A DNA stretch of 62,413 nt, filler included, from Corallochytrium limacisporum Hawaii (lineage: Eukaryota > Protista > Pluriformea): the NCBI GenBank assembly GCA_002811645.1. It is 4 parts of 4 records of this genome, joined end to end, with 100 filler letters (N's around TTAATTAATTAA, not from the genome) between each part and the next. Parts side by side here need not be neighbours in the genome. Positions count along the whole stretch, not along the records: positions 11,628 to 36,574 come from PDIP01000137.1; 3 more parts are not named here. One strand, 5' to 3'. Of this stretch, positions 15,424 through 35,600 are shown piece by piece (position 1 is the stretch's first letter; every line of letters starts with the position of its first letter). The translations under genes and the position numbers were made by a program. The notes beneath the pieces were generated by a model. It worked only from the letters and a program-made list of their open reading frames with translations, was not told where the DNA came from and ran no database searches.

Positions 15424-16885
15424 TTCTGCTGCTTGTCAAATCAGCGACTATGCTCATAGGGGCCAAGTCCCTTTGTGATACGATAACATTGAAGATCATT
15501 CCTCACGACATGCAGCGGCCATCTTATACCACTTTCCTGACCGCCCTGGCTTCCGCAATTCCCTATGCACTGGGCAATTAATGCGAATCCGCCCGCCCTA
15601 TCTAGTTTTCCATCGCAGACCGGGCGCCCATACCCCTACGGTATTACGTAAGTAAGTGCACACACCGCATCCCTCCTCAAAGTACAAACTGGAAGGGGGG
15701 GGGATGAAATTATTGTTCAGTTGTGAATATACCGAAATACCCTCCCGAGCGTTGAACACATATTGGTGAGCCTATAGCGAATGTATTACACCATCGAGAA
15801 ACCTGCTAATCTCCTGGCCGTTTCAGGGCGATGGCCCGAAAACTCTTGAGCCTGGATATGGTCTTATATTAGCAATCGCGTAGAGTACGGTACTAAAAGT
15901 AGCGAAAATGGGACCGGGGGTGTTGGACAGGATTCGTCGCACTCTCCAAAGTCCCTCACTTGTGCTTCGATAAAACCCCAACAGAACTACTACAAATTGG
16001 CCCAATATTGCCCAGTCTAACGCCCAGGTACCTGCCAGTTCCAAAACCCTGGCCCTGTGCCTACTCTCCGCCACCATCGTTCGTCGTCGTGGATGGCTGA
16101 AATTGGGGACCCCTTGGGGGAAGGGGGAGGGGGGGAAAAAAAGGAAGGGGTTCGCCGCTGGGGGAGATCCCAATTGCTTGTGTTTCGTTCCTTCCTTTCT
16201 TCTTTCCTTCCTCATTTTTTTTTTTCTGGTTGCGTTTCTAAATTTTCATCTGTTGTGTGGTAGGGGGGGTTATTCTCCAATCGCTGTGTGGCAAGACCCG
16301 CGCCGGTGGGACTTCGGCGCTGAAAGGAAAGGGTTTTCGGGTCAGCCATAGAAAATCTACCGAACTGGAGCAGAAGGAGTGTGAAAGATAGAGCAGAAGA
16401 GTACGCCAGAGGTCTCGCACAAAAATGAAAACAATCAAAGAAGCACGAATGACGGAATCTTTGGGCGCTAGGTGGGCCTCGAGCGTTCATTGCCACCGCT
16501 TCGAGGTGGTCCGATCACGACCGTTTCTGATGGTTTCCTACTCGTGTTTATATGTCCTGATCCTAATGTCCTGCTTGTTTAAGGTTCTTGAAGAGTGGGG
16601 CTTGAAATTACTGACCAGATATCGGCTGGTGATTCAATAATGAGCACCTCCTGACCGCACCCGGGCGTGGTAAAGAAACACCAGTGAACAGGAATTGAAG
16701 TGGGTCAGAGTGGGCGTATTGTAAAACGCGAAATTGTTGCGCACAATTCGAAACAGAAAATCACTATCCTTTGGTTTAAAAATGCAGTTGTAGACTAATC
16801 TTCGGGAAATCTTGGTTTGATAGTTGGTGGACACTAGCTGTATTGGGCTTTAAGAGCTGAGGTACGTGACCACAAGCGACAAAAC

Positions 16886-18472
16886 ATGTCGTTTCGACCT
16901 CGTGCGGGCACGACGGTCGCTGGACCTATATCAGAACCGACCCAGGCATACAATGCACTGGCCACACAGTCCACTTCGGTACTCCCCGATGTTACAGAGG
17001 AACCAGAGCGGACACCGACCCAACAAGGAGCGACAGCCGCGAAGGGGACCGTAGTGAAGTCTTTGTCTGACTACGATGGACCTCAGACAGCACAGAATGA
17101 GAGAGTAGGATTCTTGAAACGTATCCGTCGTCGTCTGTCATCTGCAGGTACCACGAGACCAGTACCAAAGGATTTACAACCTCCGGCCAACGGCACCAGC
17201 AATCAGAATGCAGTTCCACTAAGCGAGCAAGGGAAATTCGGCCTGCTCCGAACAAGCATTGGACACATGGAAACTGTGCCATCGCTGGCGAATGGAAGCA
17301 GCAGTGCTGAGGACATCTCGAAGGCAAAACAACGTAACAGCTCTGCCTTGAAATATGGTGGGTCAAATTCCAGTGCGCCACGCTTCTTAAGGTCTCGTGC
17401 ATTGACAGAGCCTTGGCAGTCCAAAAGAGCACTACATATCCGTCCCGACGCACAATTTGGTAAGTCAGAGTCCTATCGTAAGTTAAACAAGTTGGGTGAA
17501 GGCACGTATGCACATGTATTCAAGGGCATCAGTAGTATCACGGGCGAAACGGTCGCCCTAAAGGAAATCAATCTGGACCAAGAGGAGGGTGCACCATGTA
17601 CAGCCATCCGTGAGATTAGCTTATTGCGGGAGCTGAAGCATTCGAACATTGTTACTTTACACGACATTATCCATACCCCGGCACAACTCACGCTGGTCTT
17701 CGAGTATCTGCCGCTGGACCTGAAACAGTACATCGATCACGCGCGGGGCTATATTGATTTGGGCAACGTCCGGCTCTTCCTCTTCCAGATATTCCGGGCA
17801 CTGGACTACTGTCACAAACGTAGGATCCTGCATCGAGACCTTAAGCCACAGAATCTGCTAATTAACAAAGCTGGTGATGTCAAGTTGGCTGACTTTGGTT
17901 TGGCCAGAGCAAAGGGTGTGCCGATCAAAACCTTCAGTTCAGAAGTCGTCACGCTCTGGTACCGCGCACCTGACGTGTTGCTTGGCAGCGTAGACTACAA
18001 TGGAACCATTGATCAGTGGAGCGCAGGGTGTGTGTTGGCAGAAATGATTACAGGCAGGGCGCCGTTCCCGGGTAAGAACAATGTTGACGAACTTCTCCTG
18101 ATCTTCAAGTTGTTAGGTACGCCCAATGAGGAAACCTGGCCTGGAGTTACGTCGTTACCAGAGTGGAGTCGACGCTTCCCTGTGTACCCTGCTACGCCGA
18201 TGAACCGAATCTTGCCGCGTTTGGATGCGCCCGGCATTGATCTTGCCTCGCAGCTGCTCTCTCTGGACCCTTCAAAGCGTCCAAGTGCAGTAGAGGCGAT
18301 GCAGCATCCGTTCTTCAGCGATTACTTTGCGCCTGAGGTATACGAATTGCGCAATGACCAGGCCCTCTCATCTGTACCTGGTCTGCAGCTCAGGGCAGAA
18401 CGCAACGGAGCACGCCGCGGCACCGGACCATCGAAACATTTCCAGCGTCGTCCCTCAAGCCTTATTGTATGA
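16886..18472 (+). CDS. PCTAIRE-type cyclin-dependent kinase (CDK16/17/18 family)
   Basis: [64 protein letters not shown]; long N-terminal extension. Confidence 0.95.
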
Positions 18473-18569
18473 TATCAGAGGTTTGATATAAATACGTTAT
18501 AACAATTTCTTCTTTATTGCCAGGACCCACCGTAATACGAATTCCTATTAACTATGGTACATGTTCCAT

Positions 18570-18896
18570 TTATTCCCGCTTACTGCGACCCTTAGTTACT
18601 CGCGTAGGTTTTGCCTTGACCTGTTTTCCGTTCTGATTGCCCTCCTCTGCCGGTGGCAGATTGGTGATTTCCGCAATGAAGTAGTTGATGGCACCCCAGA
18701 GCACGATGGTGGTAACCAACATGAAGATTACATGGAAGTTAAACTCCCACCCAAACCCCAACAAGAGTAGGGACCCAAAGAGGCCCGCGAAGGCAACATT
18801 TGTCACAATAATAACACCGCTATTAACCCCAGGTGTGTTAATGGAGTCAACTACGTCCCCGATGACACCTTTGCTTTCTTGCTGTGACATGACCAT
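18570..18896 (-). CDS. PKR1: Pkr1-like ER V-ATPase assembly factor
   Basis: SINTPGVNS..IIVTNVAFAGL, NFHV, LWGAINYFIAEI; two TM helices and a basic tail, matching the yeast Pkr1 pattern; start at ATG 18896 or 18890. Confidence 0.75.
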   Translation of the reverse strand: MVMSQQESKGVIGDVVDSINTPGVNSGVIIVTNVAFAGLFGSLLLLGFGWEFNFHVIFMLVTTIVLWGAINYFIAEITNLPPAEEGNQNGKQVKAKPTRVTKGRSKRE

Positions 18897-19319
18897 TCCA
18901 GCACCCACCTACACCGTACAAAACCGTTCACGACACACAACACGACTCACACACTAAGAGTTTTGACCTTCCATTCCATACCTTCGCTGTGACAAACACA
19001 TGTTGAAACTCTTGTCCAATAGAAAAGCTTGACAACCGTACATTGGACCATGACTCGGAGAGGCCCGACACGAACGCAAAACAGTGTTAACCCACCGACC
19101 CATTCCACGCGCGAACCGGGGGGGGGGCCGGCCCCACCAGGGAGGCGGGCCCCTGCGTGTCCACATAAATTAGGCCCCGCCCTGGGGCAACGGGGGGGGG
19201 GGGTTCAAACACCCCGGGGCCTTCGTCATCCGCCCAGGGTCTTGGCCTGGCTCCCATTTTCCTGGCCCAATTGCCTGCCACCCGCCCCTTTCGGCCGCTC
19301 CGTCTCTCCAGTGTTCTCC

Positions 19320-19337
19320 CTCCCCCCCGGGGGGGAG
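19320..19337. promoter_or_regulatory. 18-bp perfect palindrome CTCCCCCCCGGGGGGGAG in the divergent Pkr1/EF-hand intergenic GC island
   Basis: Palindrome seen directly; regulatory role inferred from position and recurrence. Confidence 0.4.
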
Positions 19338-20832
19338 TGTCCAAACTCCTAAGCGAATTCCTCAGTGCGGAACAAACAGTAGTGAGTCAACCGCACTGTG
19401 GGCACCGAGCGTGAGACGATGGAGCACCTCGTAAGACAGTTGAAAGTTGACGTAGGGGTAAAAATATTTTTCTTCCCCGTCTTCTGTCTCTCCCCAATTG
19501 GAGCAATTAAGACAACCCCCAAGAGCCCGTTGGTAAAAATTAATTTCTTCAATATCCAGTACATTTACTACTGCAAGCTTCCCGCTCCACGACTTGCCTA
19601 AAATGAACCGAGACCGTCGTTCTTCTCTCGCTCTCTCTCACACACGCACCTGGAACCGGCCGGGAAGACCACCAATCCGGCCCCACTTCTGGTTTCCATT
19701 CCGTACATTATGTACCGAAATCTCGCATTTTCCACAGGCCCTTCTTTCTCCGTCCGCCATCGTTTCGAGTGCCAGCTCACCCCCCCCCCGGGGCCCCCTT
19801 GGGGCCAACTCCCGGTGCTGTTCAAAACATTCATAATCCATCAATCGGCAATTTGCAAAATACCGGTCGTCCTAGCGCACCCAGTGTCTTTCGCTTTAGT
19901 GTCTCCGATGTGGGTGAGTGAGTGAGTGAGTGTGTCTTGGGTGACCAGAAATCAAACGAGGGCTATTCCCGGGCGAATTATTGTCCAAACCGTCCGGTCC
20001 GTGGGGCAGGAAGATAGGAACACACAAAAACCAAAGCAAAAAAAGGAACCTAAAAAAATAAAATAAACAAGGTCGCGGCGAACCCAAAGGGAAACATAGA
20101 AAACTAACCATGGCGAAAAGTTTGAGAACAGCCCGTGCCAAAATCGGCAGCATTTTGGAACGCATCAGGACAAACAGTCGAACACCAAAACACCCCGCGG
20201 AGCCGGGACGGAAGCGGGGTCATCTTGATTTTGGCGACGATCAGCTGTTCAGGGTGCAACGAAGGAAAAGGTTTTAGGGGGAGGGGGAGCGTTAGGTTCT
20301 TTGGTTGGCATCGTCGTCATTAACACCCAGGGAGGGCCCCTCCGGAGGGGGGGGAGGGGAGGAGAAAACCACCGTTGGTCTCTACAGGTTGCGAAGCAAA
20401 TTGGATAACCACCGGTACTAGGTCACAGCCCCTCCCCCAAACGGGAGAGGGGGTGGATGCAGTTTGGGCTGGAATGGGGGAATGACAACGCAGAAGGGAT
20501 GTTGAAGTACGCCTTTGTATGATGCGCAGTCGATCACATTTCACTGGTTTCTTGTTCTCGGGCGAATCGGTGCGAACGGACGTTGACGTTTTGGTGCGAT
20601 TAATGGTGTCATGGCACCATATTATGGTACTTGAATTCCTGAGTCATCACCAGAATAAGGGTTCTGCAGCAAGAGAAAGCAAAAGACAAGCGATAAGTTA
20701 GATCCACAAAAACACACACACGCTTTGCACAACAACGCTCACGTGACACGAACACTAGGAGCGAAACACAAGCAAACAGCAACGATAGAGCCAATCAAGT
20801 GCAATCGCAGAAGGAAGAAGAGCGATTCGTCA

Positions 20833-21345
20833 ATGTCTGGCTACCCTCCTCCAGCTCCCGGTGGCTACGGTTATCCGGGCTACGGTCAGCCGCCCCAGGG
20901 GTATGGCAATCCTCCGCAAGGTGGAGGAGCGCCACCACCAGATCTGCCTCCGCCGTATGACCCAAATATGACTCAAGGTCAACCCTATCCTCCCCCGAGT
21001 CAGGGAGGTTACGGCGGATATCCGCCACCTGGAGGATACGGAGGCTATCCTCCTCAACCTCAGGGCTACGGTCAGCCTCCGCAGCCCCAAGGCTACGGAC
21101 AACCTCCCGGTGGATACGGTGCACCTCCCGGGGGTAAGCAGCAACGGGCAATGAATGCATTTGATCAGATTGACTCTGACCGGAATGGAATTTTGGACGT
21201 GAACGAGTTCCTGCGGGCAATGCAACTGCTGGGTATGCAGATGACGTATCAGGATGCACAGCAGGTCTTCGCAATCATTGATGTGGACCGTAACGGCACT
21301 GTGTCGAGGAATGAGTTCGCAGAGTTCTATGCAGCAAACTACTAG
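20833..21345 (+). CDS. Gly/Pro/Tyr/Gln-rich protein with two C-terminal EF-hands
   Basis: GYPP/GYGQPP repeats, then canonical loops DSDRNGILDVNE and DVDRNGTVSRNE; first in-frame ATG at 20833. Confidence 0.88.
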   Translation: MSGYPPPAPGGYGYPGYGQPPQGYGNPPQGGGAPPPDLPPPYDPNMTQGQPYPPPSQGGYGGYPPPGGYGGYPPQPQGYGQPPQPQGYGQPPGGYGAPPGGKQQRAMNAFDQIDSDRNGILDVNEFLRAMQLLGMQMTYQDAQQVFAIIDVDRNGTVSRNEFAEFYAANY

Positions 21346-21437
21346 AGGATTCGGTTGAATTCAAAACATGTCACCCTTAGCAAATTGTAAGAACTGGCAC
21401 CATAAGCAACTTTGTCACGATATGATTAACGAGTATT

Positions 21438-22646
21438 TTAAGTATTTTCATTGTACACGTAGTCCTGGTCATCTTCTCCGGGTGCAACTAGGCTTCTGGA
21501 GCTACGTAGCTGATTTGTAAGCTGGTAACTCTCCCGCTCGAGGACCCATACTTCGATGGCAGAACACTGAAACTCCTCCGCACTGGCAAGGCAGGGGTTG
21601 TCAAACACATCCGTCGCACGGCTGGTGCCCCTGAAGAGATCATGATCTAGGAAGATCGCGAAGCCTTCACCACCGCCTCCAAACATTAGGCAGTTCTCAT
21701 CCGCAGCCATGAAGTATTCCTTACTGCCGGTCCAGCGGTACGGTGTCAAATTCACCTCGTCCTCTTGCTGCACTTGCTCTACGCCCAGAGTAAAACAGAA
21801 GCATTCCCCAGTACCGTAGTATTGTTGACGGCTTGGATGCCACGGATCCGATGTAAAGCAGCCAAAGCGGTGGCCAGCGTCATCCTTGATGATGGTGACA
21901 CACGGTGCCGCCACATTGGCCAGATGCCGGAATAAAGTGTTCATAGAGTATCCATTTACGAATGTGGAGTACGCCTTGTGCCACTTCTTTTGGATCAACC
22001 GTTTCGGCAGAATTTTCATCATACAACGAACCTCTGCAGGTGTAATCAAATCCGACTCCTGCATGAGGAAGACTGCGTCACCCGGCTCAGCCAAAAGATC
22101 GTTGAAAGCTTCATCTGCGAGAGCCTTTGATCTAGCCTTTCTTGCCTCTTCCTCGTGAGCCAGGTCACCCAACAAATACTCCGAGGCATATTCCGATGCC
22201 ATCTCGAAGCCTGCTCCTATCGTCGACGGGACGAGCCCAAATACAGCACCTAAAAACTCTCCAAAAGTCTCTGGTATCTCCTCGTACGTGTCATGAGTTC
22301 GTTGACTATGCTCAGTGCTTTCAGATACATGTCGAGGAGCAGCCTGTCTTTCACCTGGGTCTGTGATATCTGTATGGCTCCGCTGGAGAATTCTTGGGTT
22401 GACTTCGTTGCTGTTTATCCCCGGATCACTTACATATCTTGACCTTTGACTTCGGTGGCGAGAGGAATTTCCCGGAAACACCCTGCCTGGCGTCCCACTC
22501 GACGATGAAGCCCGGTTGTCCCTATCTACTATTTCCCAGTCCTCACTTTCCTTTTCGGAGTCTATTGAGTTTCTTTGTTTTCGATTACTTGATTCACCGA
22601 ACCAATTGTATGCTTCCTCAAGCATAAAATCGGACGTCCCGTCCAT
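21438..22646 (-). CDS. TLDc-domain protein (OXR1/NCOA7-like)
   Basis: WHKAYSTFVNGYSMNTLF, FGCF, YYGTGECFCF, YRWTG, FGGGGEGFAIFLD, FDNPCL, IEVW. Confidence 0.92.
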   Translation of the reverse strand: MDGTSDFMLEEAYNWFGESSNRKQRNSIDSEKESEDWEIVDRDNRASSSSGTPGRVFPGNSSRHRSQRSRYVSDPGINSNEVNPRILQRSHTDITDPGERQAAPRHVSESTEHSQRTHDTYEEIPETFGEFLGAVFGLVPSTIGAGFEMASEYASEYLLGDLAHEEEARKARSKALADEAFNDLLAEPGDAVFLMQESDLITPAEVRCMMKILPKRLIQKKWHKAYSTFVNGYSMNTLFRHLANVAAPCVTIIKDDAGHRFGCFTSDPWHPSRQQYYGTGECFCFTLGVEQVQQEDEVNLTPYRWTGSKEYFMAADENCLMFGGGGEGFAIFLDHDLFRGTSRATDVFDNPCLASAEEFQCSAIEVWVLERESYQLTNQLRSSRSLVAPGEDDQDYVYNENT

Positions 22647-24224
22647 GATGAATGCAATATCGGTGGGTACGCAATTGTGTAGACTATGTCATGCTGTTCC
22701 ACATCCTGTTCTATGTAATCCCTTTGCCGACGTGCCAGATTGGTGTGATATAAAATTGGACCACTTTCCTAAGTAGGAAGCCAGTGGAGTTGCTTGCCAA
22801 GTGAAATAGCCACCACAAAAGCACTCAGTGCTCTCGGTCATCATTTTCCCTGGGAGACCGGCCGTTCACCCACTTTATTTTCGCTTACTCTGACGCCCAA
22901 ATCCCTCCGGCTCTCGCTCTCGGTGCGTAAATGCGCCTGCTTACAAAAGCAGCAGCGATCGCTATTTGCCCCATTTTTCTCCCCGTTCTTTCGTCCTCCC
23001 CCGCTGGACACTTGGCGGTCTGCAACAACCGGGAGAGCTGGCCCCCACTCCCTTTGCCTCTCTCCTGCCGGCGGCAAGGCCGGACGCAGTAGTGGTGGGA
23101 ATGGGGGATGCTCGGGGAGCCCCCAGTATTCTCGTGAATACTTTCAATGATAAAGATAAAAAAAAAGAGATTTAGTGATGGCCGGGAGGGGAGGGGAGGC
23201 CTCCTCCCCTTGGGCAGTGGTAGGAGACCGAGTTGGTCCGAACCCCCTTGGGGCGAAGCGAGTCTGCCATTGCCCACTACGCCCCTTTGAAAGCCGCAGG
23301 AGCTTCTGCGCGGTATGGAAATAGGCCCCCGATTACACCAGTCCCAGATTTGAGAGTACTGAGCAGGGTCACTTCAGAGCGAGTGACAGAAGTCAGCTTT
23401 CACCTGCGTACTCCGTTGTTGGGAGGTGTGTAGATGCGCAACATCCTCTCCTGCCGCTGGCGTCCTCAGGAAGCGCATCCACCGAGAAGGTGTTGTATGA
23501 GAGATGCGATTGCTGTGCCGCTGAGAAAGGATTACCACCAAAATCCCATTCTGTTTCCCCTGTGTGAACCTTCCCCCCCCTTGTCATCCTAGCGAAGGCC
23601 CAAAGGTAAGGCAACCAACCCCTTACCTGAATATGTCGCCTATAGTCGGCCCGCCCCCACCGGTACGCGGTACGGCCCGTGGTACTGGCCACAGAATCAC
23701 ACGAGTTAAGGAAACTTCGAGCAGGGTCGAACTCATATTTATGTGCTGTGTGTATGCGGCAAACCACTATGGAACCAGCTTTTCCGTGTCCGTTCCATCC
23801 GAAACGGGTTTAAGTGTGCGGATCCATATCAGTATTATTTTCCTTGGGAGGTTTGCAGCCAATTCCGTCTTCAGCGAGTGTCGAGCCTCGGCATTATAAG
23901 AGTCTCGTGGGCATTGGTGGGCGTGCTGTTGCGACTGCGTGTCTGCGTATGGACATTGATGACGTCTGCGTGAGATTTGGGTTCTTTGGTCAGCTAAGAG
24001 GCATATCTTCGCTCCTTACGGAGAGACGGTGCAACTAGTGTTTGGTTCTGCTCTACATTGCTGTGCGTGACGTCTCAATTTATTTCTGGTGTCCCTTCAA
24101 TGACGGTTGGGACTTACAAGTGAAATGGTATTTCATGGTGGACGTGTGGGACGTCCACTTTGTCAGCCGTTGGGACGATACGTATATTTTGTTGCAAAAT
24201 TGCAATTGGTTTGTCAACCGCACC

Positions 24225-25277
24225 ATGGAAATGGAGGGCACAAAGACCTCAAGGTCGTCAACGGTAGTGTCGGATCAGGACACAACATCAACAGCAACCA
24301 CAAAACGCTCAAGAACCATTTCCGAAATCATGGACAATGAAAGCGTTCTGCAGGTGCTGAGGAGCAAAAAGGCCTTCATCCTGGATATGGATGGTGTGCT
24401 CTACTGGGAAAGCCATACAGTGCCCGGAGCAACAGAATTCATTCAATGGCTTCAGGACAATGGCAAATTGTTTATGTGCATGACAAATGGTTCCACAAGG
24501 ACTCCCAAGGATTTGTCGGTCAAGCTGGCCAAAATGGGTGTCAACGTAGAGCCTCAGCATTTCTTTACTGCTGCGCTATCTACAGCATCGTTCCTGAACG
24601 ATCAGGCACCAGGGGAAGATTGCTACTGCATTGGTGGCAGTGGTCTGATCTCTGCACTTTACGACATTGGTTATACCATGAACGATATGGATCCCAGCTA
24701 CGTGGTGGTCGGAGAAACATCAGATTTCAACTACGATAAGCTGACTGTTGCTGTAAATCTAGTTAGACAGGGAGCGAAGCTCATCGGCACGAACATTGAT
24801 ATGTATGACAAGAGTGTCGATGGCATCAAGCCCGGCACAGGTACCCTCTGCTCAGCCATTGAGGCTGCCAGCGGCAAGAAGGCCTACTACTGTGGAAAGC
24901 CCAGTCCGCTGATGTTCCGAACAGTGCTAAAGAAATTGGGAGTTCATCCGAGCGAGGCGGTTATGATTGGTGACCGTATGGATACAGATGTCATCGGAGC
25001 TCTCGAAGCCGGATTGAGCACAATTCTCGTACTGTCCGGTGTTACCGATCTGAAGATGCTGGAACAGTATGCATACAAGCCGACTCTGATCCTGGAGTCT
25101 GTGGCCGACATTGTGGAATCAAAATTGCCAGCATTCATGCTGAACGCGTCCAAAGGAAAGAAGAACCGCAAAACAGATAGCACGGATAATGTTGATGAAG
25201 CACATGCGAGTGGATCGACACCGAAGAACAGGGGTTCTCTAGCAGTACGCCGTTCTTTTAGTGAGAACCTTGGTTAG
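24225..25277 (+). CDS. HAD subfamily IIA hydrolase, NagD-like nucleotide/sugar phosphatase
   Basis: ILDMDGVLY, MTNGS, VVVGE, LIGTN, GKPS, MIGDRMDTDVIGALEAGLSTILVLSGVT; start placed at the ATG at 24225. Confidence 0.9.
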   Translation: MEMEGTKTSRSSTVVSDQDTTSTATTKRSRTISEIMDNESVLQVLRSKKAFILDMDGVLYWESHTVPGATEFIQWLQDNGKLFMCMTNGSTRTPKDLSVKLAKMGVNVEPQHFFTAALSTASFLNDQAPGEDCYCIGGSGLISALYDIGYTMNDMDPSYVVVGETSDFNYDKLTVAVNLVRQGAKLIGTNIDMYDKSVDGIKPGTGTLCSAIEAASGKKAYYCGKPSPLMFRTVLKKLGVHPSEAVMIGDRMDTDVIGALEAGLSTILVLSGVTDLKMLEQYAYKPTLILESVADIVESKLPAFMLNASKGKKNRKTDSTDNVDEAHASGSTPKNRGSLAVRRSFSENLG

Positions 25278-25367
25278 TTCTCATGTCAACAACTAGTATC
25301 AAAATTGGTCATGAATGGATAACATAGATGAAGATTTAGTGTTTAGCGTTTTGTCTTGCAGTCAATT

Positions 25368-26375
25368 CTAGATCACCACATTCACCGGAGGTGCACGCGG
25401 AACTCGGTTCGGCGGTTGGGATCCAGCTCCCTCCGACCGCTTGACGATGGGCAGATCGCAGCATCGCGCGGGCAGCGGTTCCAGCAAAAAAAAGGGACTA
25501 ATCAATGCTTCCTCTGCCTTCAGACGACGCCGTGGATTCAGTGCTAGGAATCCCCGGATCAATTCTATGGCACCTGGACTAGCCTCTGGAACAAGATTGG
25601 TCCATGGCATCGGGTCCATGTGATAAAAGCAAATTTTGCTATAGTCCGGTAAGCATGTAACCTCCGGCCAGATGTCCAGGTTCGGCGTCCCCAACGCTCT
25701 CAACACACAGTATAGTTGGTCAATATCGTTTTCACCCGCAAATAGAGGCGACCGATTAAGCAATTCCCCAAAGATGCAACCAACGGCCCAATTGTCCATG
25801 CCTTCGTCATACTCCCTGGCTCCGTAGAGCAGTTCAATACTTCGATACCAACGGGTGGCAACTTGATGACTGTACAGCCGAGTCTGTGTGGGGTCTTCGA
25901 CAGATTTCTTTGCGGAATGAATGAATGTCCGAGCTAGGCCAAAGTCGGCGATTTTCAATTGCCCTCGGTCACTGATCAGCAGGTTGGCAGGTTTCAGGTC
26001 TCGATGCATGATCCCGTTCGTGTGCAAGTGTGCCACACCCCTCAACAGCATGCACATGTAGCTCTTCGTCTGCGATTCGCTCAAGGTAAGATCGGGCTTG
26101 TTGATGACCTCTGACAAATCTGATACCATGTACTCCAAAACGAGCATGAAGCCTGTGCTAACCGCAAAAGCGTCTAGCAAACGAATCACGTAGGGACTCT
26201 CAATGACACGCAGAGCCTCAATCTCACGTAAAATGTTCGTCGTGATACCCAGATCCACTCTTCGCAACATAACCTTCTTTAACGCCACTGTTTCACCAGT
26301 CTCATTCACTTTACCGCGAAAAACGACGCCGTGCGCACCTTCACCGATGCGGCCAAGGTTCCTGTACCGCTCCAT
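25368..26375 (-). CDS. CDK20: Cyclin-dependent kinase 20 (CCRK/LF2-like)
   Basis: [66 protein letters not shown]. Confidence 0.9.
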   Translation of the reverse strand: [335 protein letters not shown]

Positions 26376-26828
26376 CTCACCTTTGCTTTCCACGTCGCAG
26401 TTTTACACCGGTCTACATCCTCCATTCTGTCCAAAGAGCTTTTTAGGCCATGTCAATAGTTCGTATGCCCCGGCAGTTCACACTAATGTCATGTGCAGGA
26501 CGTTCCTAGTTACTAAGTAGCTTCGCCGATGGGAACAGCCCGCTTCGGGAGTCCGGATCCCCAACGGAGTCCCAAATGGGACCCCACCCCGCCCGCACCC
26601 GACAAACCGCCGGATTCAGTGGTTATGGGGAGGGTATGTGGCCTCAGACCCCGTGGCCGAAATACTCGATCGGAAATCGAGAAACAGAGAGACTGACTGG
26701 GTTTGGTACTTCAAGATGGGCATTGGAGTACACGTGATCTGTGTTAAGGACTCTGCTACAATATTATTGTGGGCACTACATAAACTCTATTTGGATACGA
26801 TCAGGTGCCTGGGCCGTGATGGGTCGTA

Positions 26829-28199
26829 ATGGTTCTACTTCTTAGGGTGGGAGTAAGGAACATCGGACTTCCTATCCGAGGCCGTGTGAAGCAAGCGAAG
26901 CCTATAGTGTATCATAGTTTTCAGAAGATATTTTATTCAAGTGGGCCTTCGAAAATGGATCACGAAGATAAGCCATTCGGGCGTATGCCAGACAATGCTT
27001 TCAATCTTTTGAACACGCAGATTCCACCACAACTACGGACGCTCGCTGACGTCATCAGCGACGAAGGCTTCCAGCTGCGCATTGTCGGAGGTGCCGTCCG
27101 GGATGCATTGATGGGTAAAACACCGAAGGATATCGACCTCGGAACAGACGGTACTCCTGAGGAGATACTAAAAGTACTGGAAACCAACGACTACCGCGTG
27201 ATTCCGACTGGACTGCAGCATGGAACGGTGACTGCTGTGGCCGGTGGTGTCAACTATGAAATTACTTCCTTGCGAATTGATCGCGCTTGTGATGGTCGGC
27301 ACGCTGTCGTCGACTTTACACGGAACTGGCGCATTGATGCTGAGAGAAGGGATTTGACGGTCAACGCCATGAGCTGCACCCTTGAAGGTGATCTGTACGA
27401 CTATTTCAATGGTTACGAGGATCTCAAGAACCGTAGATGTCTGTTTGTGGGCAATGCCGAAAAACGTATTCGGGAAGACTATCTGCGCATCCTGCGGTAT
27501 TTCCGCTTCCACGCCCGCATAGTCCCGGACCCTACTCTGCCAGGATCGCATGACGAGGCCACACTAAAGGCCCTGCGGGAAAATCGTCATGGTTTGAACC
27601 GCATTTCTGGAGAGCGTATCTGGCAAGAAATGGGCAAGATCCTTACTGGCCCTGCTGCTCCTGCAGAACTGCGGGTCATGTACGATCTGGAATTGATGAA
27701 GGAGATTGGTCTCGATCAAGACACTTCAGTGCATATGGATCATTTTTGCCGCATGCATGCTCGATCGCATGACGCAATCGCTTGTCTATGCTCATTGCTC
27801 AACTCACCTGAGGACATCGAGAAGATGAAGAAGCGGTGGAAGTTTAGTAACAGTGAAGAGCGTATGGGAATGTTCTTGGTGACTCAACGCAACAAAGATT
27901 ACTCCTTGAAAGCATGTAAGGACTTTCTTGTGGACAAGACCCCACTTGATTTTGTGGTGCAATGGACACATATTAAGGACGCCCCGGAAGCGGATATTGA
28001 CATTCTCAAGCAGTGGCCTATACCAACGTTCCCTGTGAATGGCGGCACGCTGAAGAAACTTGGCGCCAAGCCGGGACCATCCATGGGCGAAATGCTGGCC
28101 GACCTGAAGCAGGAGTGGAAGGACTCTGACTTTTCCATGGACCAGGCAGCGCTGGAAGAACGGGCCAAAGAGCGAATCTCCGCACAGCAGGAATCATGA
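26829..28199 (+). CDS. TRNT1: CCA-adding enzyme (class II tRNA nucleotidyltransferase)
   Basis: RIVGGAVRDAL, PKDIDL, GLQHGTV, EITSLRID, DAERRDLTVNAM, REDYLRILRYFRF, ISGERIW, FPVNG. Confidence 0.95.
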   Translation: MVLLLRVGVRNIGLPIRGRVKQAKPIVYHSFQKIFYSSGPSKMDHEDKPFGRMPDNAFNLLNTQIPPQLRTLADVISDEGFQLRIVGGAVRDALMGKTPKDIDLGTDGTPEEILKVLETNDYRVIPTGLQHGTVTAVAGGVNYEITSLRIDRACDGRHAVVDFTRNWRIDAERRDLTVNAMSCTLEGDLYDYFNGYEDLKNRRCLFVGNAEKRIREDYLRILRYFRFHARIVPDPTLPGSHDEATLKALRENRHGLNRISGERIWQEMGKILTGPAAPAELRVMYDLELMKEIGLDQDTSVHMDHFCRMHARSHDAIACLCSLLNSPEDIEKMKKRWKFSNSEERMGMFLVTQRNKDYSLKACKDFLVDKTPLDFVVQWTHIKDAPEADIDILKQWPIPTFPVNGGTLKKLGAKPGPSMGEMLADLKQEWKDSDFSMDQAALEERAKERISAQQES

Positions 28200-28414: not shown

Positions 28415-28804
28415 CTATGATGTGGAGGAGAGACAGCCATTTTCGAAATTCCCGTATGGAGATCGTGTCCTTTCGGTAGTAGTGGAACGAACATACCAGA
28501 TCACTTCCTGCTTCATGTTGTCAAGCTGTTCACGGATTTCTTTATAGGAAAAGCTTGTTTCATAGTTCACACGGCTACACTGAAGGGGCTCCTTGACCTG
28601 ACCGTACCCGTCCCCGCTCGTGTACAGATTCACCTTATTGGGTTTGCCCGTGACCGGATCCATGACGTGCGTTGACGAATCCGCTCTAGTCCCAGCCTCC
28701 CTGCTGTGAATTGATGTCGATTCTAGAGCAGCCGCCTGGTACGTATAATGTGTGGGCATGTCGGTGGTACCAAATGTGACCAGAACATGACCCGTGCCTT
28801 CCAT
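28415..28804 (-). CDS. Small hypothetical protein (129 aa), possibly a frameshifted remnant
   Basis: ATG-initiated ORF with an AT-rich leader, convergent on TRNT1; no recognised motif. Confidence 0.35.
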   Translation of the reverse strand: MEGTGHVLVTFGTTDMPTHYTYQAAALESTSIHSREAGTRADSSTHVMDPVTGKPNKVNLYTSGDGYGQVKEPLQCSRVNYETSFSYKEIREQLDNMKQEVIWYVRSTTTERTRSPYGNFENGCLSSTS

Positions 28805-29408
28805 GTTCTTAATACAATCTAAACCTATAATGTTCCACACTAATTGTATATATTCAATACTTGTTGTCAGGGAATATTTTAAACTAAATAGGAAAATCAC
28901 CAGTGCTGACATACAAACACAGTGCGCACCACCGCAACGTATGCAAAATTTTCACCTCTCTTTTCTTTCTTTATTAATTACTGTGCGCAACTTTGGGGCT
29001 GTGACGCCTTTTGCGCGACTCCGTTTGCGAAATTTGTCCTGGAAAATGACAAACAGCAAGTGACAAAAAGACAATAGTGATTATACAAAAATAATAGACA
29101 AAACTTTACAGACTTGTTGACAGCAACTGGCACATCATCATGTGTTGGTTTGCTTCATCTGTAGGGCGATCCAGGCCATTCGGGCACAGTGCGGAAAGTG
29201 GATACTGACCATCCCTATGTCCTGTCCCTGGTTGAGTTTCCAGGTATGTCTGGCCTCTGCTTCGCAATGCAATGACACCAAAATGTCTTGAAGATGGGTG
29301 GTAGATGTGGCGCCCATATCTCTGTAGTGGATAAGAATCCGGTGAACGATTGTTTTTTGATTCAGCATGGGCATCAGAACCAGAGATGGACAGCTCGTTT
29401 GGATATCT

Positions 29409-32400
29409 TTAGACCCTCTCTGTACTTCCAATTGTTGAAGCACTCTCAACCATCATGCGCAGGCGCTTGATCTCCTCTTCCTGCTCAGCAAGACGTTCAG
29501 CCAGGGCTTCACGATCCTCCTTTGTGGTTGTACCGTCTGTTTCACCGGCATCGACGGCAGTGACGACAGTCTTGGCCAGACGACCCTTTCCGTCGACAAC
29601 CTTTTGCTTGGTAACGACGGCGTAGATCTTGGGGAAGAACATGAGAGCCATGACACCACCGTAAGCAAGCATACCAGCAACTAGACTGATCACCAGGGCC
29701 GTATCAGGGTTGTCGATGGCAATGCGAGCTGCACGGGAGGCACCCTGCAAGAGAATAAACTGGTAAATAGTGAAGCCAATGAAACGGGCTTCGTTGAAGG
29801 CTTCAGGGGCATTGCGTACACCCCAGGCTAAAACACAGCCAAAGAGCAGGAACAGCAATTCCAGTCCAAGCAGAACATATCCGAAGATTTCTTCTGAGCA
29901 GTGGTAGTACATGGTGACGTTCAGACCGTCACGGTCAAGCTCACCAGCCTCCACCACAGTGCGCAGAGAAGGCACGGCAGACCACACAGTCAAGGCGACA
30001 GCAGCGAGGAAGGCAATGAGCACGAAGACCAAGAGCAGGCGATTGTCAGAGATTTTGACGCGCTTGTGTTTCGCGTTAAAGACACGACGGATACGGTACG
30101 TCTTGAGGAAGAGGGGAGCAAAAATGAATACGTAGGCCATGTGTTCGAACCAGTTGAGGACATTGCAGGACTCGGTGGTGGGAGCATAGATAGCCTCGGT
30201 AATCAATGTGCAGAAACCAAAGACGCAACCAACAAGAATGAGCTGAAGGAAGTCAGCGGTGGATACACGGAACGCAGGACGCTTGCGCCACATCCATGTC
30301 AGGCCCATGCAGAGCACAGCCAAAACAATTGACAAGCTAGCAATAACCATTACAGCAATGCGGAGACCTTCGTTCTCGTTGAACCAAACGATAATGTCAT
30401 CCGTAATTTCCTCAGCCTGAGGGTACATGAGCAGATTATCCAGAGGCTCTACACCAGCAGCAGCGCCATCAAAGATCAGAACCACAGGGCGATCCTGAAC
30501 AGTACAGGTAGACAGAGCAAAACCAGCAATCTCATTAGTGCAGGGATCAGTGGCGTCATCGCTCGCGGAAATGGCAGCTTGGGTCATTGAAACAGCCCAG
30601 CCGTTTGTGACGGAGAAGGGCAGAGAGTCGGGCACGCGAGAGTCCCAAGAGTTGTTGATGAAGTTGTAGTAGATGAGGGAGCTAGAACCACCACCACCAA
30701 TCAGAACGCGACGATCAGCCTCAGCATCGGTAGATTCGTCCTTGATGGCTACAGCGAAGGCACCGGAGAGCGCTGACGGACCTGTGCCAGTGGGTTCTGG
30801 ATCAGTCCACGCATCATTTACAGTATCATACACACGGAAGATGTTAGAATTGGTTGTGCCGGTGGATCCTCCAAAAAGAATCAAATGGGTAGAGTTGGCG
30901 GCAGCAAGGGTACTTAGTTCCATGGCTGGCACGTCATCGGGCACTGAAAGCTGAGACCAGGTGTCGGCAGCAAAATTGTAGGCGTAGAAGTCGTTGCTCA
31001 GGTTGTTGTTTGACAGACGACCTCCAAAGACATACATGTTATCATTTGCCACAGCCGCTGCATGGCGAGTACGGGCTGACGGGGCGCCAGTAGACGAGTA
31101 TTGAGTCCAGAACAATGTCACAGGGTCGTAGCCCCAGAGCTCATTCATGGCAACAGAAGAGCCATCCTGACCACCGAAGATGTACAAATCGTTGTTGTAG
31201 CCAACCGAGGTATGACGCTCGCGAGCACCAGGGTTGCTCACGGAGGACGGAGTGATCACCTGCCATTCATTGCGATCATAGTTCAGATCCCACAGCTTGT
31301 CGCTGACCGTACCACCGGCAACCGTTTTACCGCCGAAAATCAGGATATGATTGTTGTTGATCATGGTGGATCCCCCGTTGGTGGACTCATAGGTAACGTG
31401 TACAGCACCGCCGCTACCTGTGTGCAGGGTGCGGACTCCTTCACTATCGGTCGGGAAGGGGTAGAACAGCTTCCACAGATTTGAGGCGGTTTCAGAGAAG
31501 ACAGACTGGTATCCGTTAGTGTCGGCACCATCTTCAACAGTACCCTCACCCAGACCAACGGTAACGGATTGGACAAAGTCGTAGATAGTGGAAGTTTGGA
31601 CAACAGCACAACCAGACTCGTCTGCGACAGCGTAGACCTTATCACCGGACTGTGTAGCCGAACAGGTGGCAGTGCTGGCACACCAATCACCACCGGCAGT
31701 TTGTCCAAACAGTTCTAAACCGCCACCGGCAATATCGACGAACTTGGTTTGGCCACCAACAAATTGGTCAGCGGCAATATCACCCAAAACCAGAGCAACG
31801 GCACCGTCAGAAGACTTCTGGACAGCGGTTACCAGGTTGTCAGAGCCAGGCTCCACACCACTGTCGAACGTTTGCTCGTAGTCAGAGCCCACACCAATGA
31901 CGTACAGATTGTAGCCTGTGGTATCAGCAGCATGCAGAATGGCACCGGAACCCATTGCACCACCAGCACCGAATATCACATCCACATTGTAATTGGTGAC
32001 CATATCATCTACGGCATTCTCACCGAGTGTGGCATTGCTGAAAGAGGGTACGTAGGTAGTGCGAACATTGCAGTCCCGGCACACAGAGGTCACACCCTGG
32101 TAGAAACCAGAATTGTAGGCCTGCAAGGGACGGAAGGGAGAGCCCAGAATAATACCGACATTCTTTGTAGTTGTCAGGGAAGCGGCGATGATACCAGCAA
32201 GGACACCACCCTCCTCTTCTTTGAAGATCACACCGAGAAGATTGGTTAGTTCCGCGTTGGTATTTTCGACATCAATAATGGCGAATTTCTGATTGGGATA
32301 CTCCGCAGCCTTCGCCGAGGTAGCAGCACCCATGCTGAAAGTGGCAGTAATAACAACATCATAGGTCTCACCGTTGGTCATGACAGTGTCAATAGCACCC

Positions 32401-32606
32401 GTGTAGTCACTGTCGGTAACTTCTGTAACATCACAGAGATTGGCATCTCCCATGTATTCAGTGCAACCGTCGACAATTAACTGGAGGAAAGTATTCGTCG
32501 TACCGCCGCTCGTAATTTCATCGGGAAGAATAATGGCTACATTGTCTGGAGCAGCCATGACAATCCCTGAGAGAGCCGCCAGTGCGGCCACAGTGAAGCC
32601 CTTCAT
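29409..32606 (-). CDS. Class C (GABA-B/Grl-like) GPCR with signal peptide, BMP/PnrA-type solute-binding domain, kelch propeller, 7TM domain and coiled-coil tail
   Basis: Signal peptide MKGFTVAALAALSGIVMA; BMP motifs AAEYPNQKFAIID, FKEEEGGVLAGIIAA, DVIFGAGG..GSG, VIGVGSD; six kelch-like xxFGG motifs; 7tm_3 motifs LKTYRIRRVF, RNAPEAFNEARFIGFTIY, FFPKIY. Confidence 0.9.
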   Translation of the reverse strand: MKGFTVAALAALSGIVMAAPDNVAIILPDEITSGGTTNTFLQLIVDGCTEYMGDANLCDVTEVTDSDYTGAIDTVMTNGETYDVVITATFSMGAATSAKAAEYPNQKFAIIDVENTNAELTNLLGVIFKEEEGGVLAGIIAASLTTTKNVGIILGSPFRPLQAYNSGFYQGVTSVCRDCNVRTTYVPSFSNATLGENAVDDMVTNYNVDVIFGAGGAMGSGAILHAADTTGYNLYVIGVGSDYEQTFDSGVEPGSDNLVTAVQKSSDGAVALVLGDIAADQFVGGQTKFVDIAGGGLELFGQTAGGDWCASTATCSATQSGDKVYAVADESGCAVVQTSTIYDFVQSVTVGLGEGTVEDGADTNGYQSVFSETASNLWKLFYPFPTDSEGVRTLHTGSGGAVHVTYESTNGGSTMINNNHILIFGGKTVAGGTVSDKLWDLNYDRNEWQVITPSSVSNPGARERHTSVGYNNDLYIFGGQDGSSVAMNELWGYDPVTLFWTQYSSTGAPSARTRHAAAVANDNMYVFGGRLSNNNLSNDFYAYNFAADTWSQLSVPDDVPAMELSTLAAANSTHLILFGGSTGTTNSNIFRVYDTVNDAWTDPEPTGTGPSALSGAFAVAIKDESTDAEADRRVLIGGGGSSSLIYYNFINNSWDSRVPDSLPFSVTNGWAVSMTQAAISASDDATDPCTNEIAGFALSTCTVQDRPVVLIFDGAAAGVEPLDNLLMYPQAEEITDDIIVWFNENEGLRIAVMVIASLSIVLAVLCMGLTWMWRKRPAFRVSTADFLQLILVGCVFGFCTLITEAIYAPTTESCNVLNWFEHMAYVFIFAPLFLKTYRIRRVFNAKHKRVKISDNRLLLVFVLIAFLAAVALTVWSAVPSLRTVVEAGELDRDGLNVTMYYHCSEEIFGYVLLGLELLFLLFGCVLAWGVRNAPEAFNEARFIGFTIYQFILLQGASRAARIAIDNPDTALVISLVAGMLAYGGVMALMFFPKIYAVVTKQKVVDGKGRLAKTVVTAVDAGETDGTTTKEDREALAERLAEQEEEIKRLRMMVESASTIGSTERV

Positions 32607-35600
32607 CACTTTACCCGTGCTTTCACTGCTCTCAACTGTTTCGCGCACACAATCTTTCCGCTCGTGTCGTCCCAGATAGATTTGTATTCACGTTACTTCA
32701 CTTTGAGTAAATCACACAGAGTGTACCCGTTTTCCAGGAGATACATTCATACACACAATTCATTCAGTCCAAAGGCCTGTGCTTGCTTCAATGAAGGTAG
32801 AGATCTTCAACTACCTGTTTGGCACATGACCTGCGCAAATCCAACCGTTGAAATTCTGGCGCGGTAACGTACTAATATTCTGTGAAGTCAGTGCCATGAG
32901 CAATGAGAGTTGCAGAAAATCCCCATTCACTGCTCACACAATTATGGTTGAAGACGTAAGAGAATTGAAAGGAAATCACTTCATCAGTGGTGGGTTTCTC
33001 AAAGGAAAAATGGTTTCTGGAATATCCACTAGAAATGGTTTGGGCGAGCCGGCTCCGCCGGCACCTTTCCCCATTTTTCTCCACTGCTTCCTCCATCACC
33101 CCTCGCGACAAAGCCATGTTTGACTCAAGGCTGCATACCAGTACATTTTCCGCGGTACCGGTTTTTATGTTTCGGGGGCAGTCTCTATGGGACGGGCAGA
33201 CACCTCCGAGCGCCTGGCCCAGCAAAGTATTTTTCTTCCCCTTTGCGCACATTGATTCACGTTCTCGCGGCTCACCACCTTGCCCTTCCCACTCCGTTGG
33301 GAGGGGGAGGGTGTGGAATCCTATGTGCGCATTTCCGTCAATCAGGTCCTCGTTCACCATCCCTGCCGACCGACAACCCACCACCACCACCAAGTTTAGA
33401 CACTTTAGTCAGTTCGCAAGCGCACCCCCTTGCTGAGGAGATTCTCCGCACCAGTGAACGAGAGGGGCACTGAAGCAGTCATGAATGATGTTTCTTGGAC
33501 AGTGTATGTTTCGATGGGAATGTTTTGAAGTGAGCACGATGTCTTATACAATTGAGCACGGTTCGACGTATCTCGGCCCTAATTTCCCTTGAAAACATCG
33601 TCACCGGGACGTTAAAAGACAGCCTCCTCTGAGATCTCCTTTACATTAGAAACATAGATCCTTTAGTTCATCTCTTATTTAAGAACTTTGAACAATATTT
33701 GCTTCACCTACGTGCTCAATGTTGGTTTTTTGTCATTCGGATTCTTGTCGTCCGCTGAAGTACTAAACATTACAACCTCCGAACTCCATCTTTAGAAATG
33801 CTGGGAGACGGCCATGTACCTCAGCAGGCCCTTCTCCGCGGACACATGCGCTGAATAGATTGGCGTGCCCTCTACTGCACGTTCAACCATGGCGGTCATC
33901 AACCACAAATGGTGAACGCCATATTAATGGACTGTGTTAAACTGTTGATGACCTTTTCATGGCTCATAGTTGCAAATAAGAGGTTCTGGAGCATCTGTAA
34001 GTCCATTTGATTTGTCAACACATGTGTGCTTTGGAGGTCTCAAAAGGGATGGAAACGGATCAGTCCAAGTGTGTCTGTTCCGAATCATTACACGCGGCTG
34101 AGCGAGTCACCGTCCTGCAAGGGGGAGAAAATGAGCGATGATTGGCTGTCGCCCTCCGTGTGCATACTGGCCCACCCATTGCTATGCTTGGGTCCCCACC
34201 GCCCGCCCCCTCCCGGGGCGGGGCCCCGCTCGCTCTCCTTCATTGCGACGTGGGTCGAGAGGGTGGGTGTGCAGACAGCAACGATACGAGAAAAGCCATC
34301 GTTCAATACAAAATAGACTGGACGAGTCTGGGCAAAGACGACCAGGCAGACGAAAAAGTTTGAGCAGGGAAGAAAAAATCTTCACAAACAAAAAGCCATC
34401 CGAACGAGAAAGTGTTCGCGGTCGAGGCTTTTGGAAACATTTCGCGTGCGATATCCCATACAAACTAGCGAGGGTCATGAGGAGAAGTGGGACAACAGAA
34501 AACAAAGAGACGTGTGTTGTGCCATTTTTTTTTCACTCGTCGACGCAACTTCTTAAATGCTGCATTGCCTTATCTGCCCGGCGATCGATCAAGGGATGAT
34601 GGTTCGAAGTGTACCAAGTACGGACCGTCATGGACAAATGCTACGCGGGCTGGTCAATTTATAGCCTGGGGTGTTCTGGCGTTCAGTTTTTCGGTCCGTC
34701 GCGATTTGTTCCCCCAGTCCCCCCCCTTTTCCCCACTTCAAAGGGCTGGGCTGGGTTCTCCAATTCGTCGCCCCCGGCAACACCATAGTGAACATACCGG
34801 ACCAATATAAATGGGCACGGATCCGTCGAACTTGGTGGGGGGGGGTAGGGTAGATGGACAGACGACGGTGTGGGACTCTGTGCAATTGTTCCTTCGATGA
34901 ATTTGGACGTTTCTGTGATGCTGCAAACACAATTCATATCATATTGTGACATGCTAGAGATAGAGAGCAGATGAGCATCTCGTTATCTATACCAAACCGG
35001 AAAGAATTCCGCAGAACCCACCTTCTATGATTCCACTGTGAATGGCCAGTCGTACGGTTTTGGCTCAACGGCAAGAGGAGTGGCAGCATTCCACATTTTT
35101 AAGGAGGTAGAATCAGCGATTCTATGTGCCATGGTCGATCGCGCAAGCTTGGCTGCTTAACCGTGTGAACCATATGGTGAACAAATAGACGTACTCGATG
35201 GCGGTTATGATGTTCGAAGTTTATCAGCCCATGGACAACGAAATTGATGCAACGGGCACACAATACATAGTTTCAGCACCTTGTTGAAACCCACATGCGC
35301 GTTGTCGCCGGTGGGAACGTTGTCTGCAATCGTGCATACTCCATGAATGTGCTGAGATAAGCCAATATTTTTTGAAACTCTTGGGTTGAGGCACGGCATT
35401 GTTGACGTAAAAGTGGTCCGCATTGTTATTGCGGTTGGATACCTTCGTTCGTGGATCGTCCCTACAAACCCGTCATACATATTTGCAGTCCTCTGCACCG
35501 TCTGCCCCTCTAACACTACCGCTATGGTGGATGACAACCAAGAATCGACTCCCATGTCCTTTTGAACTGCTTGTTCTCAGGACGAAGCCCAAGAAGGCGT

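Follow-up and report, generated by a model that had tools for sequence, protein, structure and literature searches.

Gene and domain architecture

The window analysed here is a stretch of 62,413 nucleotides (filler included) from Corallochytrium limacisporum Hawaii (assembly GCA_002811645.1), and the part of it drawn from record PDIP01000137.1 (positions 11,628 to 36,574) carries one complete gene for a class C G-protein-coupled receptor (GPCR). Behind a signal peptide, a bacterial-type Bmp/PnrA binding domain and a six-bladed kelch propeller stand ahead of the seven-transmembrane (7TM) domain. The features of the locus are as follows.

29409..32606, minus strand: complete intronless coding sequence of the Bmp, kelch and class C 7TM receptor, 1065 amino acids (aa), on a contig without joints
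28953..32745, minus strand: probable transcript extent from a presumed-RNA contig, with ~140 nt of 5' and ~455 nt of 3' untranslated region
32553..32606, minus strand: predicted signal peptide, aa 1-18 (basic residue, hydrophobic stretch, small residues at the cleavage site; judged by hydropathy, no dedicated predictor)
31524..32543, minus strand: Bmp/PnrA-type periplasmic-binding domain (Venus-flytrap type I), aa 22-361 (Pfam, alignments, model)
31587..31691, minus strand: hairpin rich in Cys (C309, C315, C333), aa 306-340, inserted towards the C-terminal end of the Bmp domain, ahead of its last helix
30420..31481, minus strand: six-bladed kelch beta-propeller, aa 376-729, with the conserved N-glycosylation sequon N571 and, also conserved, the Cys pair C689/C701 in the loop before blade 6 (Pfam, model)
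29613..30374, minus strand: class C 7TM domain, aa 745-998, with KTYRI, RNAPEAFNEA and FFPK, and C814/C903 at the disulfide positions of transmembrane helix 3 (TM3) and extracellular loop 2 (Pfam, model)
29439..29522, minus strand: short coiled coil at the C-terminus, aa 1029-1056, some three heptads long with a/d residues L L Q I L V (model, scoring)

The first in-frame ATG lies at 32606, the stop codon ends at 29409 and there are no internal stops in the 1065-aa open reading frame (ORF), in a species with about 0 introns per kb (PMC5560861) and among neighbours that are themselves long intronless eukaryotic ORFs. Bacterial contamination is ruled out by these eukaryotic neighbours and by an even GC content. 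A single contig of run X4, taken to be RNA on a guess, covers 28953-32745 without joints and spans all domain junctions, although contigs of this kind cannot fix the exact transcript ends; its depth is 1373 at the receptor locus versus 5-65 on the flanks, a measure unsuited to ranking genes. In a second presumed-RNA run a contig of only modest depth extends beyond the receptor's 5' end, and a DNA contig also covers the whole locus. Run X4 derives from a second strain, whose coding sequence differs by eight synonymous and two replaced codons (V740T, C766F), codon 240 being the same in both. The effective number of codons, 45 in the receptor versus 52-63 in six neighbours, indicates a stronger codon bias. 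We consider the gene intact and probably expressed, and the bias and depth are suggestive of high expression.

All three domains exceed the curated Pfam cut-offs. Bmp (PF02608) matches aa 61-299 (E 3e-30, 105.6 bits vs a cut-off of 24.1), Kelch_KLHDC2 matches aa 416-624 (E 1e-43), additional repeats reaching aa 654, and 7tm_3 matches aa 745-993 (E 3e-42, 145.5 bits vs 33.5). An AlphaFold2 model built on a 70-row alignment, which supersedes a single-sequence model with a predicted local distance difference test (pLDDT) score of 36, reaches a mean pLDDT of 84 (exceeding 85 in most blocks of each of the three domains) and a predicted template-modelling score (pTM) of 0.69. Its Bmp part is two-lobed and agrees with PnrA, BmpD and Lbp at template-modelling (TM) scores of 0.70-0.77; sequence matches among solved structures likewise fall on PnrA, BmpA, BmpD and Lbp. 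The propeller superposes on the whole six-bladed kelch domain of LZTR1 (TM by target 0.80-0.82, root-mean-square deviation ~3 A), and LZTR1 and KLHDC kelch domains are its sequence matches among solved structures. Glycine pairs near 425, 478, 528, 579, 637 and 713 (DG in blade 6) mark six repeats and one propeller, which starts almost straight after the Bmp domain and leaves ~15 residues before TM1. The model has seven transmembrane helices, and the class C motifs are in place: K835/R838 in TM3, the Cys pair C814/C903, F937-N938-E939 in intracellular loop 3/TM6 and F990-F991-P992-K993 in TM7. The best solved-structure match of the 7TM domain is GABA-B2 (E 3e-20), with an alignment that reaches the start of the GABA-B2 coiled coil. 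Taken together, sequence and model features make the predicted protein a true class C GPCR with a predicted ectodomain of ~720 aa behind the signal peptide (hydropathy, conserved sequons).

A preliminary description of this DNA had proposed a class C GPCR with a Bmp domain and a six-blade kelch propeller as ectodomain, and Pfam, the AlphaFold2 model and the solved-structure matches bear this out, including the propeller nature of the middle region. The single intronless ORF and every motif quoted there recur where they had been placed, and the joining of the domains in one transcript agrees with the presumed-RNA contig. Two details need correction. The Bmp domain had been ended at 31710, but it runs to ~31524 (~aa 361), where the last helix and the 'G-x-I-x-T' end (aa 341-361) follow the pattern of stand-alone Bmp proteins; what had been taken for a Cys-containing linker is thus an insertion within the Bmp domain. 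This Cys-rich hairpin occurs only in opisthokont members of the family described below and is absent from stand-alone Bmp proteins. Strong codon bias was rightly noted, whereas the substantial expression drawn from it is only suggestive. The proposed GABA-B-like coiled coil is real in the receptor, as the GABA-B2 alignment indicates, but it is missing from the relatives sampled: its score is high in this protein and in the genome's other class C gene, and lower in each of the 12 relatives compared. In nine relatives of the fungal type (P0026, P0029, P0041, P0048, P0068, P0088, P0132, P0144 and P0164) a C-x-x-C motif takes its place in the tail, perhaps as a site of lipidation or of a metal-bridged dimer.

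An old family and a reused ectodomain

About 20 other clusters (50% identity) combine Bmp, kelch and 7TM domains with matching order and spacing; some are partial gene models. The full-length relatives were found by exhaustive search only; a word-indexed whole-protein search missed all of them, so a blank there does not amount to novelty. Members come from Phlyctochytrium, Chytridiales JEL0842, Chytriomyces, Chytridium, Obelidium, Blyttiomyces, Fimicolochytrium, Catenaria, Allomyces and Sorochytrium; others are a Chloroparvula entry from transcriptome data, which may be a contaminant, and metagenome contigs, at least one of which has eukaryotic neighbours. They share 21-31% identity with the receptor, and some UniRef members are labelled as family 3 GPCR or basic membrane protein domain proteins. 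A propeller profile gives near-complete held-out members 260-376 bits versus at most 160 for other kelch proteins, and the family propellers form one side of a branch with 95/82 support in the propeller tree. The Cys pairs C48/C58, C176/C179, C309/C333 and C689/C701 are shared, and the N571 sequon is present in 20 of 28 rows against a background of 6%; its conservation supports an extracellular location, and pairs and sequon together are what a secreted domain would be expected to show. By its sequence, the receptor belongs to an old eukaryotic family with a fixed Bmp–kelch ectodomain. No cluster with this ectodomain appeared in searches of the ESM Atlas. Two unusual proteins were also seen: P0163 (Chytriomyces hyalinus) has one Bmp domain, repeated kelch and two 7tm_3 stretches, either a tandem array or a fused model, and P0013 (L015:134-9316, from a public sequencing run) is a protein of 3060 aa in which nine Bmp domains stand in tandem and the C-terminus bears a hydrophobic segment.

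The same ectodomain also stands on other receptor types. In P0036, P0084, P0159 and P0165, from Pigoraptor chileana and Chromosphaera perkinsii, Bmp–kelch is followed by one transmembrane helix, a kinase-homology region that lacks the catalytic Asp and a guanylyl-type cyclase. P0047, likewise from the Pigoraptor and Chromosphaera set, has Bmp–kelch ahead of a kinase that does possess the catalytic Asp, P0061 (Pigoraptor) and P0140 (a metagenome) join it through a Cys-rich stretch to a multi-pass membrane domain without a convincing Pfam match, possibly a further unnamed receptor type, and the Amoeba proteus transcript P0158 carries the ectodomain as well. The Pigoraptor and Chromosphaera proteins share with the animal receptor guanylyl cyclases NPR-A and NPR-B the single transmembrane helix, the dead kinase-homology region and a GTP-type cyclase (KVETIGD, RYCLFG), but bear Bmp–kelch where the animal receptors have ANF; the Corallochytrium gene is the GPCR form. 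Judged from these domain combinations, Bmp–kelch is a portable module reused on several receptor outputs. In animals, the ANF Venus-flytrap serves class C GPCRs and guanylyl cyclases alike, and Bmp–kelch parallels it because it too heads both receptor classes.

In a tree of Bmp domains, 14 opisthokont rows including the receptor form a clade with 98/94 support, and a recent bacterial transfer of the receptor's Bmp domain is ruled out by its nesting there. Within the tree it pairs with a Chromosphaera cyclase (95/92), not with the fungal GPCRs. A single clade of opisthokont GPCR ectodomains that excludes the single-pass ones was rejected by the approximately unbiased test (p 0.012), a result to be read with the facts that the tested group was chosen after earlier trees and that long branches are present. 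These topologies suggest that the ectodomain was swapped between outputs more than once. One clade of all eukaryotic Bmp domains from Bmp–kelch proteins receives support of only 36/38, in trees built without Dictyostelium Grl and animal receptor sequences.

Pocket, propeller and mode of action

Solved Bmp proteins have a common pocket, in BmpA formed by F27, D98, F151, F176, A200, V224, D225 and K242, of which the two Phe F27 and F176 are essential for binding (PMC13325309). Solved-structure alignments (chain offset 6) map these residues to F40, D112, Y164, F189, A214, V239, G240 and K264 of the receptor, so that seven (all except G240) are kept. The aromatic sandwich is retained as F40 and F189, with Y164 for F151, and D112 and K264 remain of the ribose-anchoring triad (BmpA D98, D225, K242), while D225 is replaced by G240. 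Position 240 is Gly in this receptor alone and Asp in 29 of 32 relatives, and L41 stands where an Asn (BmpA Asn28) is conserved. Across 32 family rows the pocket positions hold F/Y in all 27 rows present, D in 24, F/Y in 28, F/W in 31, V in 27, D in 29 and K in 28, while the first Asp/Asn pair of the bacterial base-reading loop varies in the Bmp–kelch family. Since these positions are so strongly kept, we consider the Bmp pocket to be under selection; the family most likely binds flat heterocycles of the nucleoside kind, and the predicted pocket of this receptor is altered at one sugar anchor.

The purine or nucleoside ligand put forward in the preliminary description agrees with the PnrA-like pocket, but naming a purine was too specific. 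The solved relatives bind purines or pyrimidines (PMC7093131, PMC13325309), some characterised Bmp proteins prefer pyrimidines (PMC13325309), the Asp at 240 is lost, and Dictyostelium GrlL, which is fAR1 and is listed with a Bmp domain (PMC1885808), responds to folate and lipopolysaccharide (LPS) (PMC5969738). This Bmp-type GPCR senses a flat heterocycle through G proteins (PMC5969738), and for the present pocket a purine nucleoside would be one candidate among several.

The propeller presents a different picture. In 80% or more of rows a polar residue is retained at 11 positions of the Bmp pocket and at four of the propeller (two His, one Arg and one Asp). All four belong to the kelch repeat itself, the positions that follow each GG vary across the family, and no conserved second pocket or family-wide polar patch was seen on the propeller in the family alignment. 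Single-pass receptor guanylyl cyclases and kinases respond to dimer reorientation. Because polar conservation concentrates in the Bmp pocket, and because the Bmp–kelch unit also drives single-pass cyclases and kinases, the most likely role of the propeller is that of a rigid stalk or a platform for dimers, not of a second sensor.

The genome (24.11 Mb in 286 contigs, gene counts being lower bounds) yielded three G-alpha genes, one of them with a Gi-like end, and one G-gamma gene, together with one Bmp gene and two 7tm_3 genes; the search found no paralogue with the Bmp–kelch–7TM layout and no ANF_receptor match. The second class C receptor (L013:2325-7958, contig C64 of G000, minus strand) is a protein of 1877 aa with a signal peptide, a very long ectodomain resembling Chlamydia PMP and beta-helix proteins, a 7tm_3 domain and a coiled-coil-like tail, and recalls Dictyostelium GrlP/Q/R and the pectin-lyase-fold receptors of gut fungi (PMC1885808, PMC5168858). 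It is a possible dimer partner of the Bmp–kelch receptor.

We postulate that the receptor works as a single-input dimer in which closure of the Bmp clamp is relayed via a rigid propeller, a reading to which we give a probability of roughly 0.55. At the plasma membrane of this unicellular holozoan, a small metabolite with a flat heterocycle, such as a nucleoside, nucleobase or pterin, would be held between F40 and F189 and would close the two-lobed clamp. The disulfide-braced propeller would act as rigid pedestal and dimer platform and pass the movement to the membrane, by analogy with the cysteine-rich domain of mGlu receptors. The 7TM dimer, presumably held together by the short C-terminal coiled coil, would then rearrange and activate one of the three G-alpha subunits, the Gi-like one being the first candidate. 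Three points weigh against this proposal. With Gly at the ribose-anchoring Asp, this receptor may have a different ligand or none at all; a face that binds protein may diverge at such evolutionary distances, and its poor conservation would be compatible with a second ligand; and domain packing and disulfides are predictions from a model with a pTM of 0.69.

The preliminary description had favoured a receptor with two inputs, a nucleoside or purine and a protein or glycan partner. On this reading a small metabolite would dock in the Bmp domain, the propeller would hold a protein, a peptide or a glycan, for example on a prey surface or as a co-receptor, and signalling would need or integrate both. 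Kelch top faces do bind partners in LZTR1 and KLHDC2/3/10, the nearest solved folds, and protein-binding faces evolve fast. Attractin-type extracellular propellers serve as accessory receptors. This role is relevant to two inputs, as the receptor's propeller matches Pfam Beta-prop_ATRN-LZTR1, and fAR1 answers both folate and LPS (PMC5969738). However, fAR1 does so with its flytrap alone (PMC5969738), the family propellers share no conserved polar patch, the propeller sits between the Bmp domain and the membrane, and among complete family members no propeller-only receptor was found. With only structural kelch residues conserved in the propeller, the idea finds no direct support, and we regard it as unlikely, if still worth weighing.

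Less probable again is that the protein is a ligand-blind or altered-specificity subunit of the GABA-B2 kind, coupling to G proteins on behalf of the C64 receptor, to which the C-terminal coiled coils would join it. G240 and L41 do replace conserved pocket residues, the 7TM domain and tail align best to GABA-B2 into the coiled coil, and the only two 7tm_3 genes found each encode a coiled-coil-like tail, which is missing from the relatives sampled. Yet seven pocket residues are kept, both aromatic walls included, codon bias and depth suggest abundant expression of the Bmp–kelch receptor, and short coiled coils would fit homodimers equally well. We think it very improbable that the propeller is an enzyme or lectin, galactose-oxidase-like or like the sialic acid mutarotase NanM, that processes ligand beside the sensor: it matches Pfam Kelch_3/4 (galactose oxidase central domain) and, weakly, NANM (40 bits vs a cut-off of 45), but kelch repeats in general give such matches, the six-bladed fold resembles LZTR1 where the oxidase has seven blades, and invariant catalytic polar residues are absent across the family. 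An artefact that joins separate genes in assembly or annotation has a negligible chance, even though apparent gene-model fusions with unrelated neighbours exist among the relatives (P0038, P0068), because a single open frame and spanning contigs of DNA and of second-strain presumed RNA rule it out, hidden introns included, and the domain order recurs in the ~20 other clusters.

Known receptors, surroundings and significance

Set against its closest known counterparts, the receptor combines familiar parts. With the GABA-B (B1/B2) and mGlu/CaSR/T1R receptors it has in common the class C 7TM domain, a type I flytrap sensor and a C-terminal coiled coil, and mGlu-type receptors likewise have a rigid spacer between sensor and 7TM; but its sensor is Bmp instead of ANF and its spacer a kelch propeller instead of NCD3G, and neither ANF_receptor nor NCD3G gave a Pfam match in the receptor. 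From the bacterial nucleoside-binding lipoproteins (PnrA/TmpC, BmpA/BmpD, Lbp), which it resembles in fold (TM 0.70-0.77) and in most pocket residues, it differs by its fusion to a 7TM domain, the added Cys pairs and Cys hairpin, and the changes Asp225 to Gly and Asn28 to Leu. The Dictyostelium Grl receptors GrlA-D, F-H, J-M and O consist of a signal peptide, a Bmp domain and a class C 7TM domain (PMC1885808, PMC10445921); at 704-819 aa they have no room for a 350-aa propeller (PMC1885808), which in the 1065-aa receptor lies between Bmp and 7TM. No Grl sequences were returned by our searches, including one via the amoebozoan member that yielded stand-alone Bmp proteins only. On the evidence of its ectodomain, the receptor falls outside the GABA-B, mGlu and Grl subfamilies.

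Bmp-7tm_3 receptors have been reported from Allomyces macrogynus (AMAG_08984 and AMAG_12053; PMC3251606), and Bmp-7tm_3 has been called a conserved architecture (PMC3971589); in this study Allomyces AMAG_19637 (P0041) proved a full member of the Bmp–kelch–7TM family. The texts of these two papers, figures and supplements aside, name Bmp only, the word 'kelch' being absent. In the searchable article texts, figures and most supplements aside, we found no description of a kelch-containing class C receptor and none joining 'kelch' with '7tm_3', the sole occurrence in the papers checked for 'kelch' being a legend entry for tyrosine kinases, and literature searches on kelch with GPCR, Bmp or receptor guanylyl cyclase returned no description either. 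The preliminary suggestion of an undescribed receptor therefore stands as regards published text on the kelch-containing form, but not as regards the layout, which occurs in ~20 other clusters, mostly of zoosporic fungi. The architecture is common in these fungi, whereas its members, as far as found, are uncharacterised.

No signalling cluster surrounds the receptor: the window genes at 14452-28199 are of housekeeping type, namely SRAP/HMCES, a PCTAIRE-like cyclin-dependent kinase (CDK), an EF-hand protein, a TLDc protein, a NagD-like hydrolase of the HAD type, a CDK20-like kinase and a CCA-adding enzyme. Just downstream, at 28415-28912 on the minus strand, lies an ORF of 165 aa with a hydrophobic N-terminus and no Pfam match, and contigs of both presumed-RNA runs reach to 28840. 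Positions 31442-31702 are identical to a 261-base contig in a 2023 marine metagenome, hinting at Corallochytrium or a near-identical strain in environmental samples. Directly upstream of the C64 receptor, on the same strand, is a heliorhodopsin gene (L013:8782-9669, minus strand; PF18761, E 1e-41).

Ectodomain diversity is already known in class C receptors outside animals (PMC5168858, PMC12716839), and one more combination would in itself be minor. What matters more is that the Bmp–kelch sensor recurs on three receptor classes in chytrids, blastoclads, filastereans, ichthyosporeans and corallochytreans, and that NPR-type receptor cyclases of animal relatives can run on a sensor other than ANF. 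We tentatively propose, at somewhat less than even odds, that Bmp–kelch is an undescribed second 'universal' ectodomain of at least opisthokont age, perhaps older, swapped more than once among class C GPCRs, NPR-type cyclases and kinases in parallel to the ANF domain of animals. In zoosporic fungi and unicellular holozoans the Bmp–kelch unit would detect nucleoside-like cues whose source is bacteria or decaying matter, and animals and dikaryan fungi would have lost it. At its strongest, the proposal would have the propeller contribute a second binding site. Given that the conserved pocket names a ligand class, sensing by zoospores and unicellular holozoans becomes testable, and Corallochytrium, with apparently two class C receptors and one Bmp gene, offers a simple system in which to test it.

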